IMG/VR virus record: IMGVR_UViG_3300046003_007892
Location: 62,001-126,000 of that record
DNA: 64,000 bases
Reading direction: 5' to 3' (one strand)
Position numbers and translations under genes: made by a program. Under the pieces are notes generated by a model. It searched no databases. It had not been told where the DNA came from and saw only the letters and a program-made list of their open reading frames with translations. This document shows positions 2,018 to 58,283 of this stretch, piece by piece. The stretch's first letter is position 1; every line of letters begins with the position of its first letter.

Positions 2018-2044
2018 GAAAAATCTCCTGCCGGTGTTGAACCC

Positions 2045-2079
2045 AACATAGACGGCTCTGGAAACTTGTCAAGTAAATA
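2045..2079 (-). promoter_or_regulatory. early (host sigma70-type) promoter
   Basis: TATTTAC-TTGACA-N16-TATGTT; same design at 7372-7406 and 8117-8151. Confidence 0.75.
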
Positions 2080-2083
2080 AAAA

Positions 2084-7350: not shown

Positions 7351-7371
7351 GTGTCTCTCCTCTGAGAGGAC

Positions 7372-7406
7372 AGAATAGACGACCGTGCACACTTGTCAAG
7401 TAAATA
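7372..7406 (-). promoter_or_regulatory. early promoter
   Basis: TATTTAC-TTGACA-N16-TATTCT. Confidence 0.75.
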
Positions 7407-7408
7407 AA

Positions 7409-8092: not shown

Positions 8093-8116
8093 CTCAAATC
8101 TCCGTTGCTGGATGCG

Positions 8117-8163
8117 AAGATAGACGAACTGTGTTCTTTGTCAAGTAAATATCTAGATAAATA
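8117..8163. promoter_or_regulatory. back-to-back early (minus) and late (plus) promoters
   Basis: minus TTGACA-N16-TATCTT; plus TAAATA at 8146 and 8158. Confidence 0.7.
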
Positions 8164-11899: not shown

Positions 11900-11960
11900 A
11901 TCCTGCCATCTACATTAATTTGACGATCTCGTCTACCAAAATATTCGGTCTAAATACGGC

Positions 11961-20443: not shown

Positions 20444-20977
20444 ATGAATATTGAACTACTCCAAGAATATATCGAGCAGGGTCTGTCCAGCTATCAGATC
20501 GCGGCCAAGACCAATAAGGCGGCGACGACCGTCCGATACTGGATAAAGAAGCACGGCCTCAGCATTTCAAAGCCTGATAAGCCGGATAACCATTGCGCCC
20601 GGTGCGACACCGTCAAGACCAGAGACGACTTCTACCAATACGACACCAAGCGGAGGACGACCTACTGTAAGCCCTGCATGGCGTCGTGGATGAAAGATCG
20701 CTGTCGGAAGCTCAAGGCCCTGGCGGTGGAATATGCGGGAGGCTGCTGCAAGGGCTGCGGCTACGACAAATATCAGGGTGCTCTAGACTTCCATCACCGG
20801 GACCCGGCGCAGAAGGATTTCTCCATTGCTGCCAACATGCGGCGCGGAGACCTCAGCGAGACCATGAAGGCCGAGATCGATAAGTGTGTTCTCCTTTGTG
20901 CTAACTGCCACCGCGAGGCTCACGGCGGACTACGGGATTGGAAGATGGAGGGCCCTGAGAGAATCGAACTCTCGTGA
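20444..20977 (+). CDS. HNH homing endonuclease with HTH and Zn-finger
   Basis: ALDFHHRDP, LLCANCHREAH; TAAATA-N6-ATG; antisense inside tRNA operon. Confidence 0.9.
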   Translation: MNIELLQEYIEQGLSSYQIAAKTNKAATTVRYWIKKHGLSISKPDKPDNHCARCDTVKTRDDFYQYDTKRRTTYCKPCMASWMKDRCRKLKALAVEYAGGCCKGCGYDKYQGALDFHHRDPAQKDFSIAANMRRGDLSETMKAEIDKCVLLCANCHREAHGGLRDWKMEGPERIELS

Positions 20978-21019
20978 AGTGATTAAAAGTCACCTATTCT
21001 GCCATTGAATTAAGGGCCC
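20946..21019 (-). tRNA. tRNA-Lys(UUU), canonical length
   Basis: loop CUUUUAA, U73, CCA. Confidence 0.9.
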
Positions 21020-21022
21020 ATC

Positions 21023-21116
21023 TGGAGAACGCGGTGGGACTCGAACCCACGGGGTCAGGCTTGCACCTGTTACGGGCTTAAAAGGCCCGGCCTCTCGCCA
21101 CTGAGGTGACGCGTCC
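21023..21116 (-). tRNA. tRNA-Lys(UUU) with long variable arm
   Basis: 94 nt; CGGGC-CUUUUAA-GCCCG; V-arm CAGGU-GCAA-GCCUG; U73, CCA. Confidence 0.8.
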
Positions 21117-21130
21117 GTTCAGAAGAAACT

Positions 21131-21217
21131 TGGAGGATTGGATGGGACTCGAACCCATGATGAGCTTACGCTAGCGGGGTAAGAACCCGCGCCTCTCGCC
21201 GCTGAGGTGACCAATCC
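21131..21217 (-). tRNA. tRNA-Lys(CUU) with long variable arm
   Basis: 87 nt; GCGGG-UUCUUAC-CCCGC; V-arm AGC-GUAA-GCU; U73, CCA. Confidence 0.8.
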
Positions 21218-21235
21218 GAGAAGTGGTGTGGGTGG

Positions 21236-21311
21236 TGGTGAACGCGCTCGGGTTCGAACCGAGGACCAACAGATTAAGAGTCTGTCGCTCTACCAACTGA
21301 GCTACGCGTCC
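21236..21311 (-). tRNA. tRNA-Lys(CUU), canonical
   Basis: loop CUCUUAA, A73, CCA. Confidence 0.93.
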
Positions 21312-22399: not shown

Positions 22400-22442
22400 A
22401 AGGGTGTTTTAGACCATTGGGGAAACTTGTCAAGTAAATAAA

Positions 22443-24195: not shown

Positions 24196-24202
24196 GGCGT
24201 AT

Positions 24203-24706
24203 TTATTCGGAGCGGAAGACGATGTCGGACGCATTCACACGCAAGACCGGTGGCATCTTGACGATCACCTCATCTTGGGCTCGCATCTTCGTGAACGGTT
24301 GGGCCTCTTCGTCAAAACGGACGAGGTCGCAGAACTCGTCCAGACCTTCCTTCTTGATCACGACATAGGCGGAGTCGAAGCCGAACATGAAATCGGTTGC
24401 GCTGTCTTGTTCACTCGACCAACTAGCAAGCGGTCTCCCCGCCGAGATAATGTCGAAGAAACCATTTTGGCGCAGGCTTTCTTTCTGGGCCCGGTCGGGC
24501 ATGTAGCCTCGATAGAGGGCGGCATGACCAGAGGTGAAGTGGTTGGCAGTCGCTTCCAGAGCCAGGAGATCGTTCTGGACCTCGTCCATGTCACCGCAGA
24601 CCCAGGTCGAAAGCGCACGACATAGGAGCTTCACCTGCGGGTCAGGATGCTGGCAGGATTGCCAGTGCGGTTTGGCAGTCTCCATGAGGACGTCGATGTA
24701 TCGCAT
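24203..24706 (-). CDS. late protein with capsid-targeting-like N-terminus, possibly ART-like
   Basis: TAAATA-N4-ATG; MRYIDVLMET; LYRG..ASWS..A.DF..QDEV. Confidence 0.7.
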   Translation of the reverse strand: MRYIDVLMETAKPHWQSCQHPDPQVKLLCRALSTWVCGDMDEVQNDLLALEATANHFTSGHAALYRGYMPDRAQKESLRQNGFFDIISAGRPLASWSSEQDSATDFMFGFDSAYVVIKKEGLDEFCDLVRFDEEAQPFTKMRAQDEVIVKMPPVLRVNASDIVFRSE

Positions 24707-28600: not shown

Positions 28601-29014
28601 ATGCGATATAGTGAGATCAACGAAGGTCAGGTTAGGAAGGTGGAAGTTCACTTCCGGCAGCCCGAAGTTATCGTTTACATCAACCCATCTGCTGCTCAAA
28701 TCGATACTGCTCTGTCGCGGACACAGTATGCTTGCCTGCGAGCCCACCTGGGAGATAAACTATTGGTTTGGGATGCCGAGTTTGCCACGCACGATCACGT
28801 CGATGACTGCGGAGAGTTCGGCAAGCTCAAGTATATCCGCCTCCTGATCGAGGACCACAAAATCCGCTGCATGCGCTACGGCTATGACGGCGCCGATTTC
28901 CCCACGGACCCAAACACCCTGGAAGACCTCATCTCGCACGAGCAACTCGTCGAGGCCGTGCAGTCCCATCCGCTGATCATGCAGGCGTTCCCCGGCTACC
29001 CGGTCTGGGCCTAA
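28601..29014 (+). CDS. late protein with capsid-targeting-like N-terminus
   Basis: TAAATA-N4-ATG; MRYSEINEG. Confidence 0.75.
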   Translation: MRYSEINEGQVRKVEVHFRQPEVIVYINPSAAQIDTALSRTQYACLRAHLGDKLLVWDAEFATHDHVDDCGEFGKLKYIRLLIEDHKIRCMRYGYDGADFPTDPNTLEDLISHEQLVEAVQSHPLIMQAFPGYPVWA

Positions 29015-29021
29015 ATACAGC

Positions 29022-29777
29022 ATGCGCCTTCTTGCCCTCTGCGAATCCGAGCAAAGCGATAGAGATGATCGCTTGAGGGCCAAACTGGCTTTCAAGCAGA
29101 TCAAGTATTGGCTCGACGCCAACGCGGATGATGGCTTCCGGCGTTTGAAGAAACTCCCCGAGGGAACCCGCTACGCGGGCTCGTTCGCACTCTTGTCTGA
29201 AATGTGCGATCTTGATGCCGACTATCCAGATTTGGCATTCATCTTTATCGACCGGCTCGATATCACTGGCGGGAGAGTCACGGCCAGCTTTGGGCAGTCT
29301 GCGGACAAGTCCAAATCTTTCATCTTCATTGGATGCCTGAAGGGACCTGGGGATTCCACGTATCTGAACACGCGTTTCTCCGGGACGGAGAAATATTTCG
29401 TCCACGAGTTCATGCACTACCTGATGCGCAAACGGGCACCGGATACGAAGCCGTCAACGTCCAAGCTGAATGGCAACGATTGGACGGACTACCACAACGA
29501 CGCTGACGAGACGAACGCCTACTATCAGGAGGCCGCTCACGGTGCTGTGGATTTCTTCCGCGTGGTTGCCTCGCACGCGCCAGTGCGCGTCGATGAGTTT
29601 GCCGACATGACGGTTCAGGAACTCGTCGCCTTCATCGTTCCACGGTTCGTCAACCAGGATTTCCTCGGCGACCTCACGGCGGACAATCGCAGGGCTCTCT
29701 TCAAGAGACTGGCTCGATGCGTGAACGAGACCATCAAGCCCATGCTAGAGCGCGCACGAGTAGCAGCCGTCGTCTAG
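29022..29777 (+). CDS. late HExxH metallopeptidase-like protein with capsid-targeting-like N-terminus
   Basis: TAAATA-N4-ATG; MRLLALCES; FVHEFMHY..DETNAYYQE. Confidence 0.7.
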   Translation: MRLLALCESEQSDRDDRLRAKLAFKQIKYWLDANADDGFRRLKKLPEGTRYAGSFALLSEMCDLDADYPDLAFIFIDRLDITGGRVTASFGQSADKSKSFIFIGCLKGPGDSTYLNTRFSGTEKYFVHEFMHYLMRKRAPDTKPSTSKLNGNDWTDYHNDADETNAYYQEAAHGAVDFFRVVASHAPVRVDEFADMTVQELVAFIVPRFVNQDFLGDLTADNRRALFKRLARCVNETIKPMLERARVAAVV

Positions 29778-30206
29778 CGGCGGCACCAGGGCCAAGGGTT
29801 TGACCATCGGGGTCACTTTCGCGAACAGGCGGCGCAGAACAAGTTCCGAAACATTTTTCCTCAGCACGAAGACGCCCTGCGGCCGATCAGCCTCCGGGGG
29901 CTTCGGCCGTTTCTTCATCTTGGGACGGGTTGATTTCTTGACGCTGACGATCTCGCAGACGGGCTCAACCGAATGACACTTGGTCGCCTTGACCGTGTAG
30001 GAATAGATGTCTTCGTATTCGCCGGACCAGATTTCGTAGTCACTATCGTCGATGATGTCATTGATCTCATCTTCGAACAGTGAATTGTAAGTGCTGGGTT
30101 CTGGCTTCGACGACGATTTATGATAGTCTTCCACCAAGTCGTATTCCCAGTGGTCTTCGTCGTCCTCGTCGTCCATCGTGATGATTTTGAGATTCATCGC
30201 CATCAT
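29745..30206 (-). CDS. hypothetical protein, paralog 3
   Basis: PEADRPQGVFVLRK motif. Confidence 0.7.
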   Translation of the reverse strand: MMAMNLKIITMDDEDDEDHWEYDLVEDYHKSSSKPEPSTYNSLFEDEINDIIDDSDYEIWSGEYEDIYSYTVKATKCHSVEPVCEIVSVKKSTRPKMKKRPKPPEADRPQGVFVLRKNVSELVLRRLFAKVTPMVKPLALVPPLDDGCYSCAL

Positions 30207-30637
30207 TTCACCGCCGCGAGCGCGTGGTTGAGTTGGAAATCCGAGACCCCCTTGGCCAGGATGAAGACGCCAGGGAGCTTGGGTGGGTGGATGTCCCGCT
30301 CTGGGTGGCCCATGCGGTCGAGTTCGTAGATGACCTCGTCGATGGCGAGTGATCGGGCCTCTTCTTCAATCCGAATCATTTCCAACAGACGGTACGAGCT
30401 AGGGCTCGGTATATAGCTGTGCCCTAGCTTATCCTTGAGACGGTACGCTTTCACGAAGCGGAGGTTATTTTCGCCACGAATGTCGAGCCATTGAATGAGA
30501 CCGTTGTGTGGGTTTCTCCCCATGATCTGAATGGTCTGGCTCCGGGGGTTGAAGCGCAGTTCTCCGATGGGTCCCTGGCCGCCCCGTTGTCCAATGCCCA
30601 TGTTGGTGATTTGGTGACCTACCGTTGAGACACTCAT
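30203..30637 (-). CDS. hypothetical protein, paralog 2
   Basis: PGVFILAKGV motif. Confidence 0.7.
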   Translation of the reverse strand: MSVSTVGHQITNMGIGQRGGQGPIGELRFNPRSQTIQIMGRNPHNGLIQWLDIRGENNLRFVKAYRLKDKLGHSYIPSPSSYRLLEMIRIEEEARSLAIDEVIYELDRMGHPERDIHPPKLPGVFILAKGVSDFQLNHALAAVK

Positions 30638-31083
30638 GCGGCCAGAGCCCCATAGAGACGCCGCAGGGTGATCTCCGGCACGCCCTTGCGAAGCACGAAC
30701 ACCCCGTCTGGGCGGTCTGCTTCAGGCAGCGCGTCCTGCTTCAGGATACGCTGCTTGAAGTAGTTGTTCTTGATCGTGGTCGCATTGGAATACGTGTTCA
30801 GGTAATAGTTCGAGACGTTGTAGGTATAGGGGTTCTTGGGAGGAGGCGGTTTCGCCTCTCCTGTGTGGAAATCGTACTCGGCACCGTTTGAGAACGTCAT
30901 CTTACGGTTCCGTTTTTCCGACTTCTTGATCTTTTTCTTGCTCGGTTTGTCGGGCTCGACATAGGGGGCACGCGGGTCATCCGCACCATAGAAGGTGTCA
31001 GTGGTGCCGTCGTATATGTTGCCGTTTGAGAACCTGACAGCCACAGTGGCTCCGAAGGTAAGGGATGCCCGCATTCGTAGCAT
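30634..31083 (-). CDS. hypothetical protein, paralog 1
   Basis: PEADRPDGVFVLRK motif. Confidence 0.7.
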   Translation of the reverse strand: MLRMRASLTFGATVAVRFSNGNIYDGTTDTFYGADDPRAPYVEPDKPSKKKIKKSEKRNRKMTFSNGAEYDFHTGEAKPPPPKNPYTYNVSNYYLNTYSNATTIKNNYFKQRILKQDALPEADRPDGVFVLRKGVPEITLRRLYGALAA

Positions 31084-31103: not shown

Positions 31104-31784
31104 TTAGATTTTCGCTGGCCAGAGTTTGTCGATTGCCCCGCGCATGAACTCCTTGCAGGTGCAGGATTTGCCCGTGACGTGGTCTTCAATCGAGTTGTCG
31201 CGGAAACGGTAGGTGCGGATTTTGTCACCCCGCATCCCGCTGCCGACCTGGGCCGCACGAATCACATTGGTGGCCTCTCGCCCCGCCGTGCTCCGACCGG
31301 CGTCCAGTTTCGCCACAAGGCCTTCCATGGCCTCGCGCTCGTTGGAGGCACGGCTCCGTCCTTGAGACTTCACCGACAGCCCGGTGGGGACATGGGTGAG
31401 GTCTAGGGAGTTGTGGTGCTTGTTGGCGTGCTGGCCGCCCGCGCCGGTTGCCCCGAACCACCGGTAGGAAAAATCACTATTGTCCCTGCGGTCGTAGGCG
31501 GCATCTACAGCGTCTGCGTCCGACAGCACACTGACCGTGACCGTGCTGGTGTGCACGCGGCCCTTGCGTTCGGTTGGTGGTACTCTCTGGATTCGGTGGC
31601 CACCGGCTTCGTGCTTCAGGCCTTTCGCGGCATCACTCGCGACAATGGTCACCATCGAGTCGGTGACGTCGATGCTGGTCAGTCAACCCTTTTGGGTCAG
31701 GTATTTTGCGTAGGTTTCGCCCAAGTCTGCCATAAACAGCTTGGCGTCAGAACCGCCCTCGCCGGGGCGAATCTCGATAATCAT
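31104..31784 (-). CDS. RF1-like peptide chain release factor lacking domain 1, in-frame TGA at codon 34
   Basis: GAGGAG SD; MIIEIRPGEGGSDAKLF; QRVPPTE (PxT); GGQ; TGA at 31683-31685. Confidence 0.85.
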
Positions 31785-31850
31785 GAGACACTCCTCTGGG
31801 GCGCCAATCGCCCCAAGGTATTTACCTTACAGGAATGGTCTACCAGATGT

Positions 31851-32159
31851 CTAGTTCTTCGGGAACTTCGGCCCGGCGATCAGGTAGACGGACTTGTCTT
31901 CCACGGAGCCACGGCCGATCACGACGATCTGTTTGGCGATCAGGCGTTTGACAGCGGACCATTCGCGCGGCGTGGTGATGATGCCGACGTGGGTCTCCGG
32001 GCCGCCAGTGGGATTGACGAGTTTCTGGCTCGCATAGCCGGTTTCCCACTCGCCATTGCGCTTGAGGCGATTGATGAGGTCTTCACCCGCCCGCATGTCG
32101 GAGATGATGCTGGCTTCGCAGTCAGCGATGGTGCGGGGCGGCTTGGGGGAAAAGGTCAT
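31851..32159 (-). CDS. hypothetical protein
   Basis: ATG 6 nt after TTGACA-N16-TAAGTT. Confidence 0.65.
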   Translation of the reverse strand: MTFSPKPPRTIADCEASIISDMRAGEDLINRLKRNGEWETGYASQKLVNPTGGPETHVGIITTPREWSAVKRLIAKQIVVIGRGSVEDKSVYLIAGPKFPKN

Positions 32160-33797: not shown

Positions 33798-34364
33798 ATG
33801 AGAACTCTCCGAACCTGCCTTGAATACGAGGCCACATGCAAACCTGAGATCGCCGACCTGATGGCACGGGCTGAATACCTCACCGATCATGAACTCCAGA
33901 CCGTCCAGGTTCCGCTACCGTGGTTTCGTGATGCCCTGCGGGAACTCCGCGACGAACTGAAGGGCCAGACGATCATGAAGATCACCGGGGCGGTCCTGAA
34001 TGACTACGTCACGATCTCGACCAACCCCGACCCCGAAGGCGTCACCTATCAATGGATGGGGATGGACACCTACGTCAAGGTCGGCAACACGCAACTGCTC
34101 CTCAAATATGGGGAGTATTTCTGGTTCGACCCCGAGGGCGGCGTCTGGCTCGACACCATCTACTGTCGGGTGCCCGACCCGATCTTGCGCGCCAGCCAGC
34201 CCGGTCGAATCGCGGTCATGACCCGCAGCCGCTATCAAGAAACCCTGCGGGCGGCCAGGAACAAGAACTGCCCCGCAAACGCACAGGTGATGGAGATCAG
34301 CGACGGTCGTCCCTCTGCTCTCGGTGGAGTCCTTGGACAGTTCGGCGTCCGTATCCAGCGATAA
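33798..34364 (+). CDS. late protein with capsid-targeting-like N-terminus
   Basis: TAAATA-N6-ATG; MRTLRTCLE. Confidence 0.7.
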   Translation: MRTLRTCLEYEATCKPEIADLMARAEYLTDHELQTVQVPLPWFRDALRELRDELKGQTIMKITGAVLNDYVTISTNPDPEGVTYQWMGMDTYVKVGNTQLLLKYGEYFWFDPEGGVWLDTIYCRVPDPILRASQPGRIAVMTRSRYQETLRAARNKNCPANAQVMEISDGRPSALGGVLGQFGVRIQR

Positions 34365-34371
34365 ATACGCC

Positions 34372-52574: not shown

Positions 52575-52589
52575 GCGGTATTTAGGCGC

Positions 52590-54349: not shown

Positions 54350-55909
54350 GTGGGACGTAATCCGCTAACGAAGACCTTCGACCACCAAACCGAAGAGACT
54401 TCCATCTATCAGGCCTGGGAAACCAGTGGCGCCTTCAAGCCATCAGGCAAAGGGGAACCCTATTTCCTCCCCATGCCCCCGCCGAACATCACCGGCATTC
54501 TGCATATGGGCCACGCCCTGTTTGCAACCCTTCAGGACATCAGCACGCGATTCAACCGGATGCGGGGGCGCAATACCCTCTGGCTGCCGGGGACCGATCA
54601 CGCCGGGTTGGCCACGCAAGCCAAGCTGGACGAACTCATGATCGCTCAGGGGCTCGACCCGCAGGGACCGGAGTTCGACGCGTTCGCTGCCGACTACAAG
54701 GCCAACCTGAAGAGCACCATCACGGGTCAGCTTCGCCGTTGTGGCGCGTCTGCTGACTGGTCCAGAGAGACCTTCACGCTCGACGACGATTACAGCGCAG
54801 CCGTCATCGCCGCCATGGAGAAATGCCATGAGGCCGGGATGCTCTACCAGCGGGACGGCCAGTGGTGGCTCGACATGGAACCATTGGCGGCTGAACTCCT
54901 GTCCGAGATGGACGCGGGGAGCCTGGAGATCATTCCCTCGGGCGGTGAAGGCACGCTGCGCAACTTCCTGACCAAGATCGAGCCGTGGTGCATCAGCCGT
55001 CAAATCCGCTGGGGTCATCGTTTGCCGATCTGGAAACGGAACGGCATTCGCTCCGGCATCCAGCGCATCAACGAGTTCACGATCAGCGCGACCTGTCCGG
55101 GAGACCCCCAGGATTGGACGCAGGAAGAAGGATGTCTGGATACGTGGTTCTCTTCGGCCCTCTGGCCGTTCGCCACGCTGGGTTGGCCCAAAGACACTCC
55201 CGACATGCGGACCTTCTACCCGGCCGCCATGATCGAGACCGCCGACGACATCCTGTTCTTCTGGTGCGCCCGCATGCTCATGATGGGGCTCCTCCTGACT
55301 GACCAGATGGCCTTCAAGACAATCTTCCTGCACGGTCTCATCCGGGACAAGGACGGGCGCAAGATGGCCAAGTCCATCGGCAACGGCATCGACCCCCTAG
55401 ATATCATCGAGAAGTTCGGCTGCGACGCCATGCGGTTCGCTCTGGCCGAAGATGCCACGCCGGGCCAGGACATGCGGATGTGGGATGAAAAGTTCCAAGC
55501 CGCGAAGGGACTGCGGACCAAAATCTGGAACGCATCCCGGTATGCGATCTCGCACTGGGACCGCATCGGCCACGGTCGTCTCGCATTCCCGTCCCAGCAT
55601 CCCGATGACATCGCCATCCGGGCCCGGCTAGACGAAACCATCCAGGAAATGACTGCCATGCTAGAGGGGCTTCGCTACCACGAGGCCGCCTTCACCATTC
55701 GGCAGTTCATCTTCAATGACCTGTGCGGGACCTACATCGAGCAGACCAAGTCTCGGCTCTACGATGAGAATGACATGGCGGCCAACGCGACCCTCATGGA
55801 AACCCTCCATCAGACCCTACGTCTCCTCCACCCGTTCATGCCTTACGTCACGGAGAGGATTCGGGCAGCCTACTCGCCAGACCCCTTGATCACGACCGAC
55901 TGGGTGTAG
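54350..55909 (+). CDS. valS: valyl-tRNA synthetase, minimal (no CP1 editing domain)
   Basis: PPPNITGILHMGH, WCISRQ, LDTWFSS, KMAKS; 519 aa. Confidence 0.85.
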   Translation: MGRNPLTKTFDHQTEETSIYQAWETSGAFKPSGKGEPYFLPMPPPNITGILHMGHALFATLQDISTRFNRMRGRNTLWLPGTDHAGLATQAKLDELMIAQGLDPQGPEFDAFAADYKANLKSTITGQLRRCGASADWSRETFTLDDDYSAAVIAAMEKCHEAGMLYQRDGQWWLDMEPLAAELLSEMDAGSLEIIPSGGEGTLRNFLTKIEPWCISRQIRWGHRLPIWKRNGIRSGIQRINEFTISATCPGDPQDWTQEEGCLDTWFSSALWPFATLGWPKDTPDMRTFYPAAMIETADDILFFWCARMLMMGLLLTDQMAFKTIFLHGLIRDKDGRKMAKSIGNGIDPLDIIEKFGCDAMRFALAEDATPGQDMRMWDEKFQAAKGLRTKIWNASRYAISHWDRIGHGRLAFPSQHPDDIAIRARLDETIQEMTAMLEGLRYHEAAFTIRQFIFNDLCGTYIEQTKSRLYDENDMAANATLMETLHQTLRLLHPFMPYVTERIRAAYSPDPLITTDWV

Positions 55910-56432: not shown

Positions 56433-56719
56433 CGGAGATGCTCCATCACGGTCGCGAGTTCAGGGAGGATGCGGGCCTCGGCGGCATCGTTTTCGGCCCA
56501 GGTCGTCGGATAGGAAACGTATTCAGATAGGCGAATCCGCCATCCGTTTCCTGAAACATTTTTCGGTTCCACGGTGAGGCGCGGTGCGAACAGGTTTGTG
56601 AGACGAGCGGGCGGGCCGTAGCCGGACCATATGTCGTGTGCGCCCTCAAAGCGGGGGGCGTAGTGGGAACAGATGGCCTCTACAGCGGCCACCTCCTCGG
56701 GTGTGGACGGGCGTATCAT
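56429..56719 (-). CDS. hypothetical protein
   Basis: 96 aa, coupled. Confidence 0.6.
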   Translation of the reverse strand: MIRPSTPEEVAAVEAICSHYAPRFEGAHDIWSGYGPPARLTNLFAPRLTVEPKNVSGNGWRIRLSEYVSYPTTWAENDAAEARILPELATVMEHLR

Positions 56720-58068
56720 GCGCTCCTCCAGACCGTTCCCTCGGGCTTGTCTTCTAGTACGACACCCATGCTTTCGATCTTGGCCCTCAAGCGGTCAGCC
56801 TCGGCCCAGTCCTTATTGGCCCGCGCCGAGTTGCGTTCTTGAATGAGTTCCCAAATGTCGAACATCGGCCGGGTGTCGGTCTTGCGTTGACGCCAGCGGG
56901 TCGGGTCGGACTCCAACAAGCCCATCATGTTGGCCGACCGGAGAAGCTTATCGACGCTCTCTTCGCCGCGCGAAACCCGACTGGCCAGATCGTGCAGGGC
57001 CGCCAGTGCACCGGGGGTGTTGAGATCGTCCTGAAGGGCCCCCAGAACGGATTCATCGACGTCCGGGGGTCCGGCGACCTTTCCGTTCAGAACAGCCGTG
57101 TAGAGGCCGTTCAGAGCCTTCTCCGCCTCTTCCATGCGGGCTTCGGTATAGTCGATGGCCGCTCTATAGTGGGTGGAGAGCAGGAAGTAGCGCACGACCT
57201 CGCCGTCGAGATCGCTTTTCATGAGTTCAGCCAAGGTGACGAAGTTGCCCTGGCTCTTCGACATCTTCTTGCCGTCTACGGTCAGCATGCCGTTGTGGAG
57301 CCAGTAGTTGGCCAGCGGCTCACCGTGCGCGCATTCCGACTGCGCGATCTCGTTCTCGTGGTGGGGGAATATGAGATCGGAGCCGCCGCCGTGAATGTCG
57401 ATGGTCGGGCCGAATATGCGGGCGATCATGGCCGAGCATTCGATATGCCAGCCCGGACGTCCCATTCCCCACGGCGAGGTCCAGACAGGCTCACCCGGTT
57501 CCTTGCCGGGTTTCCACAAGACGAAGTCGGCGGGGTCGCGCTTGTATGAGCCGGGCTCGACGCGGGCCCCGGCTTGGAGGCCGAGAAGGTTTTGTTTGGA
57601 GAGCTTGCCGTGTTGGGCGTGGCTCTTCACCGAGAAGAGAACGTGCCCATCCGCCACGTAGGCGTGACCCTTGTCGATCAGCGTGGTGATCATCTCGATC
57701 ATGACGCCGATATGCGTGGTCGCTCGGGGGTTCAAAGTTGGGTCGAGGTTCCCCAGCATCCGCATCACCGAATGGTAGACCTGGATGGTCTCATTGGTGA
57801 GTTCACTGATGCTGATGTTGCGCTCTTTTGCGCGCTCGATGATCTTGTCGTCGATGTCCGTGTAGTTGCGCGCGAAGAAGACGCTGTCCTCCCCATAGGT
57901 GTGGCGAAGGAGACGGAACAGGATATCGAACGCGGCGGCGGGGCGACCATTTCCCAGGTGGGGGTGGTCATAAACCGTGGGGCCGCACTGGTACACGGTC
58001 ACCCGGTTGGGGTGCAGGGGAGTGAACTCGCGTTTCTCTCCCGTCATCGTGTCGTGCAGCTTGATCAT
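56716..58068 (-). CDS. cysS: cysteinyl-tRNA synthetase
   Basis: YQCGPTVY, HLGN, GRPGWHIECS, FPHHENE, KMSKS, anticodon-binding helix. Confidence 0.95.
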   Translation of the reverse strand: MIKLHDTMTGEKREFTPLHPNRVTVYQCGPTVYDHPHLGNGRPAAAFDILFRLLRHTYGEDSVFFARNYTDIDDKIIERAKERNISISELTNETIQVYHSVMRMLGNLDPTLNPRATTHIGVMIEMITTLIDKGHAYVADGHVLFSVKSHAQHGKLSKQNLLGLQAGARVEPGSYKRDPADFVLWKPGKEPGEPVWTSPWGMGRPGWHIECSAMIARIFGPTIDIHGGGSDLIFPHHENEIAQSECAHGEPLANYWLHNGMLTVDGKKMSKSQGNFVTLAELMKSDLDGEVVRYFLLSTHYRAAIDYTEARMEEAEKALNGLYTAVLNGKVAGPPDVDESVLGALQDDLNTPGALAALHDLASRVSRGEESVDKLLRSANMMGLLESDPTRWRQRKTDTRPMFDIWELIQERNSARANKDWAEADRLRAKIESMGVVLEDKPEGTVWRSA

Positions 58069-58248
58069 CTGATCTCCAAAATACGGGTGGCCCCGGACAA
58101 CTCGACCACCCGCCGCATACTTTAATACACCCGTTGCCGCGTTGCCGCGCAGCATCCCGACCCAGCATTGAGCCGAAGACCCGGCGACGGGGCTCATTTT
58201 CACGTCCCCGTACCTTCCCACTATCATGGGAACTATTTTTTGCAAAGC

Positions 58249-58283
58249 AAAAGGGCCGGACTGGTTTCCCAATCCGACCCTTT
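58249..58283 (-). terminator. intrinsic terminator
   Basis: GGGTCGGATTGG-GAAA-CCAGTCCGGCCC-TTTT. Confidence 0.8.

Follow-up and report, generated by a model that had tools for sequence, protein, structure and literature searches.

Several described systems tie the synthesis of a release factor to a stop codon or link a release factor to UGA decoding, and the best known is bacterial prfB, in which an early in-frame UGA, the codon specific for RF2, is bypassed by a +1 frameshift at a CUU-UGA slippery site with a spaced Shine-Dalgarno (SD)-like element, so that RF2 regulates its own production. Atkins et al. (PMC5009743) note that a version based on in-frame readthrough was once expected but was found in no bacterial RF2 gene, and that the UAG counterpart in RF1 genes is also unknown; the only viral case they cite is a megavirus/mimivirus-type eRF1 gene, which needs both readthrough and a frameshift. 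No recoding is known for the bacterial RF1 gene prfA (Prince et al. 2025, PMC12421855). In phage Q-beta, low-level reading of UGA by host tRNA-Trp inserts Trp and extends the coat protein into A1. Borges et al. found RF1, TrpRS, and a UGA suppressor tRNA together in the proposed code-change module of Jade phages, which recode TGA genome-wide in late genes, and report that these code-change genes are written in standard code, whereas Al-Shayeb et al. list RF1 and RF2 among huge-phage genes without comment, using code 11 calls. Finally, PrfH (RF-H), a release factor homologue paired with RtcB, lacks the N-terminal domain but keeps the codon-recognition-like and GGQ domains (PMC6514570). Our literature searches found no description of the gene family reported here or of its in-frame UGA.

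We analyzed a 64,000-nucleotide stretch (the window; GC about 0.58) of the 240,363-bp IMG/VR contig IMGVR_UViG_3300046003_007892, in which a first-pass annotation had described a phage RF1-like gene interrupted by an in-frame UGA at a conserved Trp position. This observation is confirmed. An open reading frame on the minus strand is interrupted by a single TGA and continues in the same frame to a terminal TAA (Table 1), and the mechanical ORF list, which starts at the internal ATG 31655, misses 43 codons. The first piece matches Pfam PCRF positions 102 to 134 (E = 2.6e-7) and the second matches PCRF 153 to 194 plus the RF-1 domain, and the two are therefore collinear. The first piece also aligns without gaps to Escherichia coli RF1 residues 111 to 143, which places the TGA on Trp144. 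We recovered 81 cellular RF1 genes from the genome scan and the phage collection, all of them uninterrupted (median length, 378 codons), and in this column 79 have Trp and two have Ile or Leu.

Table 1. Features of the interrupted RF1-like gene and its surroundings, in window coordinates.
Feature	Position	Strand	Remarks
TAAATA promoter-like element	31819-31824	-	34 nt upstream of the start codon
5' leader hairpin	31798-31814	-	GGGGCG-ATTGG-CGCCCC, between TAAATA and the SD
Shine-Dalgarno	31791-31796	-	GAGGAG, 6 nt before ATG 31784
First 33 codons	31686-31784	-	MIIEIRPGEGGSDAKLF...YAKYLTQKG; start of RF domain 2, EIRxGxGG motif
In-frame TGA (codon 34)	31683-31685	-	position of RF1 Trp144; next base C; proposed readthrough site
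Remaining 192 codons	31107-31682	-	rest of domain 2, domain 3, and domain 4
PPT tripeptide	31572-31580	-	RF1-type PxT, stop-codon recognition
GGQ motif	31431-31439	-	catalytic motif
Terminal stop	31104-31106	-	TAA
Three small co-oriented genes directly downstream	29745-31083	-	30634-31083, 30203-30637, and 29745-30206; the first two end in TGA that overlaps the next ATG (ATGA); no Pfam family found

The encoded protein resembles RF1 more than any other release factor but is not a typical member. RF1 is the best hit in Pfam, NCBIfam, and PDB: RF1 models score 153 to 163 bits, compared with 89 for RF2 and 43 for prfH, and PDB RF1 chains match at E = 3e-29, such that the sequence evidence for the RF1 fold is strong. 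It retains the GGHR(I/V)QR and HTS decoding elements and the IRTYxF motif, and in the family alignment P35, P36, and GGQ are invariant and T37 is nearly so. However, the RF1 scores fall below the curated equivalog cut-offs of 400 to 423 bits (TIGR00019/NF001859), and at 226 residues, against about 360, the protein starts at the equivalent of RF1 residue 111 and lacks domain 1 (about 105 residues), a point that the first-pass annotation did not mention. The upstream ORF (31851-32159) has no Pfam hit and is not a detached domain 1. PrfH shares the missing N-terminal domain, but the prfH model (TIGR03072) scores far below its cut-off of 166.65 bits, no RtcB was found among the eight neighboring ORFs scanned, and RF1 decoding motifs are retained here.

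We next asked whether relatives carry TGA or TGG at this site, since TGG in relatives together with decay of this copy had been named beforehand as grounds for rejecting the idea. A scan of IMG/VR returned 80 loci at 47 to 54% identity, and all 79 that reach the site have TGA; a scan of JGI metagenomes added 68 loci that reach the site, all with TGA; and three closer relatives (59 to 69% identity) from Logan and ENA assemblies have it too, with a separately annotated 34- to 38-residue ORF that gets its own PCRF hit. Pooled across IMG/VR, JGI metagenomes, ENA, Logan, and NCBI, 152 loci that reach the site (135 unique genes, 46 to 70% identity, GC 0.34 to 0.69) all have TGA in this column and never TGG, TAA, or TAG, which is far beyond chance. 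In a collection of 5.8 billion proteins, nearly all close homologues are called at 165 to 195 residues, that is, cut at the same place. Six apparently intact homologues of 226 to 253 residues show W at the site, but the three checked at the DNA level still carry the stop and had been translated with code 4 on 1- to 2-kb contigs; they are not TGG variants. A nucleotide search of the locus against 50,697 GenBank phage records found nothing, and a translated search found only hits of 42% identity or less, to contaminating bacterial RF1/RF2 and to huge-phage genes; no isolated phage carries a family member.

Selection holds TGA specifically. Across the family, the 31 codons before the stop are under purifying selection (pN = 0.225, pS = 0.758, pN/pS = 0.30) while synonymous sites are saturated, and invariant Glu, Lys, Asp, Tyr, and Phe columns use both synonymous codons freely (e.g., GAA 110/GAG 25, GAA 103/GAG 32, AAG 60/AAA 55, TAC 86/TAT 49). 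In contrast, the interrupted column is never TGG, and the two other conserved Trp columns are TGG in 132 of 132 and 107 of 107 genes. Each of the 69 unique IMG/VR genes has exactly one in-frame TGA and no in-frame TAA or TAG, and their terminal stop is TAA in 64, TGA in 4, and TAG in 1. TGA and TGG are therefore not interchangeable in these genomes, and a one-step change to TGG has been kept out.

The rest of the window uses the standard code, consistent with the earlier proposal of local rather than genome-wide recoding. In our heuristic, composition-filtered gene sets, coding density is 0.826 under code 11 and 0.796 under code 4, and TGA is the commonest stop, ending 44 to 49 of 87 to 100 genes. 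A six-frame codon usage model finds same-frame coding continuing after 2 of 44 TGA, 3 of 23 TAG, and 2 of 19 TAA stops, compared with 28 of 40 mid-gene control points, and coding does continue after the TGA of the RF gene (score 10.3, the best of six frames). The two ATGA overlaps downstream show that UGA acts as a stop on what is probably the same transcript; overlaps of the looser form NTGA are uninformative, because about 75% are expected by chance. A GC3 frame test had suggested that coding continues after TAG stops, and one aminoacyl-tRNA synthetase (aaRS) looked truncated at a TAG, but the sequence after that TAG is not coding and the six-frame model removed the signal, which was an antisense artifact. 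ORF cover in 49 kb of the huge phage LR756501 likewise does not improve under code 4, whereas in short loci greedy ORF cover without a composition filter rises for any removed stop codon and is uninformative.

No helper in trans or in cis was found. ARAGORN detected no tRNA with anticodon UCA among several hundred tRNAs in the window (64 kb of the 240-kb genome), within 3 to 6 kb on either side of the gene in 86 related loci, or in 49 kb of LR756501. tRNA-Trp(CCA) lies nearby in five loci; two of three nearby phage tRNA-Trp genes have a U11-A24 pair like the Hirsh suppressor, and all have 5-bp anticodon stems, but this is common in tRNAs and is not evidence of suppression. No secondary structure is conserved after the TGA (0 predicted pairs in 23 diverse members), the fold energy after the UGA in the window's own copy is unremarkable (z = -1.27), and Rfam has no match, so readthrough may be only at background level. 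Apart from the TGA, only the GG of the preceding Gly codon is near-invariant (at least 90% of the 23 aligned sequences), and Gly is also the commonest residue there in cellular RF1 (43 of 81). The first-pass annotation noted a weak UGA-C context also used in prfB, but this is not a family feature: the next base is A in 97, C in 25, G in 13, and T in none of the 135 genes, compared with T after 28 of 104 genuine TGA stops in flanking genes. This fits avoidance of the strongest termination context but may equally reflect the following residue, which is K, Q, R, or T in cellular RF1. Only 10 of 135 genes have an in-frame ATG within 25 codons after the TGA, and only 1 has a start codon with an SD, such that separate initiation of the second piece is not conserved.

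The first-pass annotation also missed the gene's membership in a large phage-only clade and its setting among translation genes. In a maximum-likelihood tree, 72 TGA-bearing genes form one clade (support 98/92) that is sister to three huge-phage genes, and both are separated from 82 cellular RF1s by a long branch (100/99). No family member appeared among the best 80 loci returned from 185,579 species-representative bacterial genomes. The huge-phage relatives LR756501, LR756502, LR745206, and LR756504 (GC 0.27 to 0.32) also lack domain 1 and carry one or two in-frame TGAs, never TAA or TAG, at other early codons, although in LR756501 one of them is at the Trp site; a fifth short RF1-like gene from a huge phage, LR756511, which was not in the tree, has none. 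In most loci the family gene sits inside a tRNA island, with a phage tmRNA next to it in seven loci and IF-1 directly upstream in one, and the window itself has six tRNAs, a CysRS, and another class I aaRS. The four GC-rich relatives share TAAATA followed by a 5- to 7-bp hairpin and then an SD; outside the window the stems differ in sequence (GTGGGG/CCCCAC, CTGGGA/TCCCAG, and CTGGA/TCCAG). TAAATA is enriched in the window (32 matches, 4.2 expected), although its earlier designation as a late element remains putative.

We consider it most likely (probability roughly 0.65) that the gene encodes a phage-specific minimal RF1 whose synthesis needs programmed readthrough of the UGA at codon 34. In this view, a ribosome reaching the UGA either terminates with host RF2, releasing a 33-residue peptide, or accepts a near-cognate tRNA and completes the 226-residue factor. 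The tRNA is most likely tRNA-Trp (anticodon CCA), the classic UGA misreader, which would restore the ancestral Trp; background UGA reading by endogenous tRNA-Trp(CCA) in E. coli is documented (PMC13092985). By the tripeptide rule, a factor with PxT rather than SPF should read UAA and UAG but not UGA, and the yield would therefore depend on host RF2 activity relative to tRNA-Trp and not on the phage factor itself, giving a low basal level that rises when UGA termination is slow. The extra RF1-type factor could then take over UAA and UAG stops and free RF2 for UGA. The analysis itself establishes the anatomy of the gene, the conservation of the TGA under selection, its place on the Trp position, standard code elsewhere in the window, and the absence of a detectable cis RNA structure or conserved restart codon; the inserted residue, the production of full-length protein, peptide release and its codon specificity (deduced from the PxT, Gln, and Thr decoding residues alone), and the feedback logic are inferences from sequence. 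The earlier interpretation is thus partly supported: the RF1-type assignment, the Trp position, and local recoding hold, and relatives carry TGA with no sign of decay, but production of the factor only when RF2 activity falls or a suppressor is present, while a reasonable inference from PxT specificity and the RF2 specificity of UGA, is not shown, and no suppressor tRNA was found in the DNA examined. Unlike prfB, the frame here is zero, so no CUU-UGA slippery site or spaced SD is needed, and the result would be cross-regulation by host RF2 rather than autoregulation; unlike Q-beta A1, the stop lies inside a domain, so that only the readthrough product can fold; the amoeba virus gene encodes a eukaryotic-type eRF1 unrelated in sequence and host system; and unlike in Jade phages, the genome is standard-code as far as seen and the RF1 gene itself is the exception.

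Two alternatives remain possible, though each is unlikely. First, the phage or a helper could supply a UGA-reading tRNA (anticodon UCA or an altered tRNA-Trp), with the factor made only after that tRNA appears, as part of a code change from TGA to Trp like that proposed for Jade phages. Suppressors were detected in only 35% of code 4 phage genomes by Borges et al., so absence is weak evidence; the gene sits among phage tRNA genes; and only 27% of this genome was examined, such that a suppressor tRNA, or late genes with in-frame TGA, could lie elsewhere; however, TGA is the main true stop in the window, code 4 brings no gain in coding density there or in 49 kb of LR756501, TGA and TGG are not interchangeable within the gene, no UCA-anticodon tRNA was seen, and the code-change genes of Borges et al. 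are in standard code. Second, by the same mechanism, the UGA could be a constitutive attenuator that just keeps a potentially harmful, RF3-independent factor at a very low level with no sensing role. Overexpression of release factors reduces fitness (PMC12421855), no stimulatory structure was found, and a simple attenuator of a toxic protein explains the data as well as an RF2 sensor does. Yet a weak SD or start codon would do the same job and could evolve easily, whereas the gene keeps a strong SD and an invariant TGA over saturating divergence, the interrupting codon is only ever TGA, and TGAs appear at other positions in four of five huge-phage relatives, which favors the RF2-specific codon mattering. 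A split gene, with two chains made by restart after termination, is very unlikely even though gene callers annotate two ORFs and the short one gets its own PCRF hit, because restart codons are not conserved, the split would remove a Trp conserved in 79 of 81 cellular RF1s, and a plain split would not require the break always to be TGA. Selenocysteine insertion, although UGA is the selenocysteine codon, is made very unlikely by the lack of a conserved hairpin or Rfam match after the UGA and by an ancestral Trp in a buried-looking helix end rather than a redox site, and a sequencing error or pseudogene, although TGA is one base from TGG, is refuted by 152 independent loci from many samples and assemblers and by purifying selection on both pieces with no other stops or frameshifts.

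A more far-reaching reading, which is not excluded but which we hold only tentatively, is that when UGA termination becomes limiting during infection, readthrough rises and the additional RF1-type factor takes over UAA and UAG, freeing RF2 for UGA. This would be a viral cross-regulatory homeostat for termination and the first natural release factor gene in the bacterial world controlled by in-frame stop-codon readthrough, and it appears to have been reinvented at different codons in a sister clade of huge phages. Public gene calls split or truncate nearly all of these genes, or translate them with code 4 on short contigs, and the family is therefore misannotated and can mislead genetic code prediction for phage contigs. 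The family also defines a phage-only minimal RF1 without domain 1, a natural test of what domain 1 and RF3 recycling are needed for; truncated E. coli release factors without domain 1 reportedly still release peptide in a codon-dependent way but lose the RF3 interaction (Mora et al. 2003, listed in PMC6514570). Programmed readthrough and stop-codon control of a release factor are each known, but we found their combination in this form described for no bacterial or phage release factor gene. This family would be the missing case that recoding researchers once expected, with the twist that the codon is specific for the other release factor, so the virus would be reading the state of a host factor.

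The window carries 32 TAAATA sites, an approximately 8-fold enrichment. At many of these sites TAAATA lies only 4 to 6 nt before an ATG (TAAATAcgccATGcgc), which suggests near-leaderless transcripts from a phage promoter. Several of the genes positioned in this way begin M-R-x-L/Y-I-D-L and may therefore be a paralogue family. A longer repeated motif, ATAGACG-N11-CTTGTCAAGTAAATAA, occurs four to five times on the plus strand and is possibly a second promoter class or an operator. We also found that a 5′ leader hairpin between TAAATA and the Shine-Dalgarno sequence of the RF gene is kept in four relatives with entirely different stem sequences; this looks like covariation, although there were too few sequences for a test.

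Features noted in the window and in related loci (L numbers denote related loci; RF, release factor gene)
Feature	Sequence	Coordinates	Strand
TAAATA (5 examples of 32 sites)	window	24200-24205	-
	window	34362-34367	+
	window	11951-11956	+
	window	29012-29017	+
	window	52579-52584	-
Longer repeated motif	window	2039-2080	+
	window	7366-7407	+
	window	8111-8152	+
	window	22400-22441	+
Longer repeated motif, variant	window	33786	
5′ leader hairpin of RF gene	window	31798-31814	-
	L085	5832-5851	
	L086	5821-5835	
	L087	5844-5857	
Three small genes downstream of RF gene	window	29745-31083	-
Cysteinyl-tRNA synthetase and second class-I aminoacyl-tRNA synthetase	window	56716-58272 and 54350-55909	- and +
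Four tRNA-Lys genes	window	20946-21311	-
IF-1 gene	L016	2545-2841	
GcrA-like gene	L086	8537-8974	
tRNA-Trp(CCA)	L009	1199-1272	
tRNA-Trp(CCA)	L037	1677-1750	

Members of this RF family also occur on contigs of 1 Mb or more, namely, locus L208 (Ga0308170_10000002; 1,057,871 bp, GC 0.66) and the contig encoding protein P0111 (1.56 Mb). These could be megaphages, prophages in bacterial chromosomes, or chimeric assemblies; L208 has the usual tRNA genes next to the gene. The contig of L086, a close relative, carries a GcrA-like gene. GcrA is an alphaproteobacterial cell cycle regulator that is also found in phiCbK-like phages, and its presence is a weak hint at the host group of the GC-rich subclade. 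On short contigs, public gene calls translated the RF gene with code 4 (loci L081, L082, and L083 and proteins P0056, P0066, P0085, P0104, P0112, and P0118), and these entries could mislead genetic code predictors. In two huge-phage short RF1s, L088 (LR756501) and L089 (LR756502), the Gln of the GGHRxQR decoding element is replaced (GSHCFIR and GSHCFVR, respectively), which may change third-base recognition of stop codons.

In the window, the three small proteins encoded downstream of the short RF1 gene share a C-terminal motif (ADRPxGVFVLRKxVxExxLRRL), have no Pfam family, and look like tandem paralogues. In L016, an IF-1 gene (Pfam eIF-1a/IF-1, E = 3e-18) ends just before the RF gene, and an IF-1-like C terminus is also visible in the upstream-frame translation of a further locus, L032. 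Two phage tRNA-Trp(CCA) genes near the RF gene, in L009 and L037, have a U11-A24 pair, as in the Hirsh UGA suppressor of Escherichia coli; this pair is common in tRNAs, and so the resemblance is only a lead. The window itself has four tRNA-Lys genes in a row, two of which are unusually long (94 and 87 nt) and possibly contain an intron or are miscalled. In seven related loci (L026, L031, L038, L042, L050, L052, and L064), a phage-encoded tmRNA gene lies directly beside the short RF1 gene, and in L052 it starts within a few bases of the RF stop codon; a functional link between the two is possible. The phage of the window also encodes a cysteinyl-tRNA synthetase (Pfam E = 5e-115) and a second class-I aminoacyl-tRNA synthetase, which makes it a translation-rich jumbo phage.
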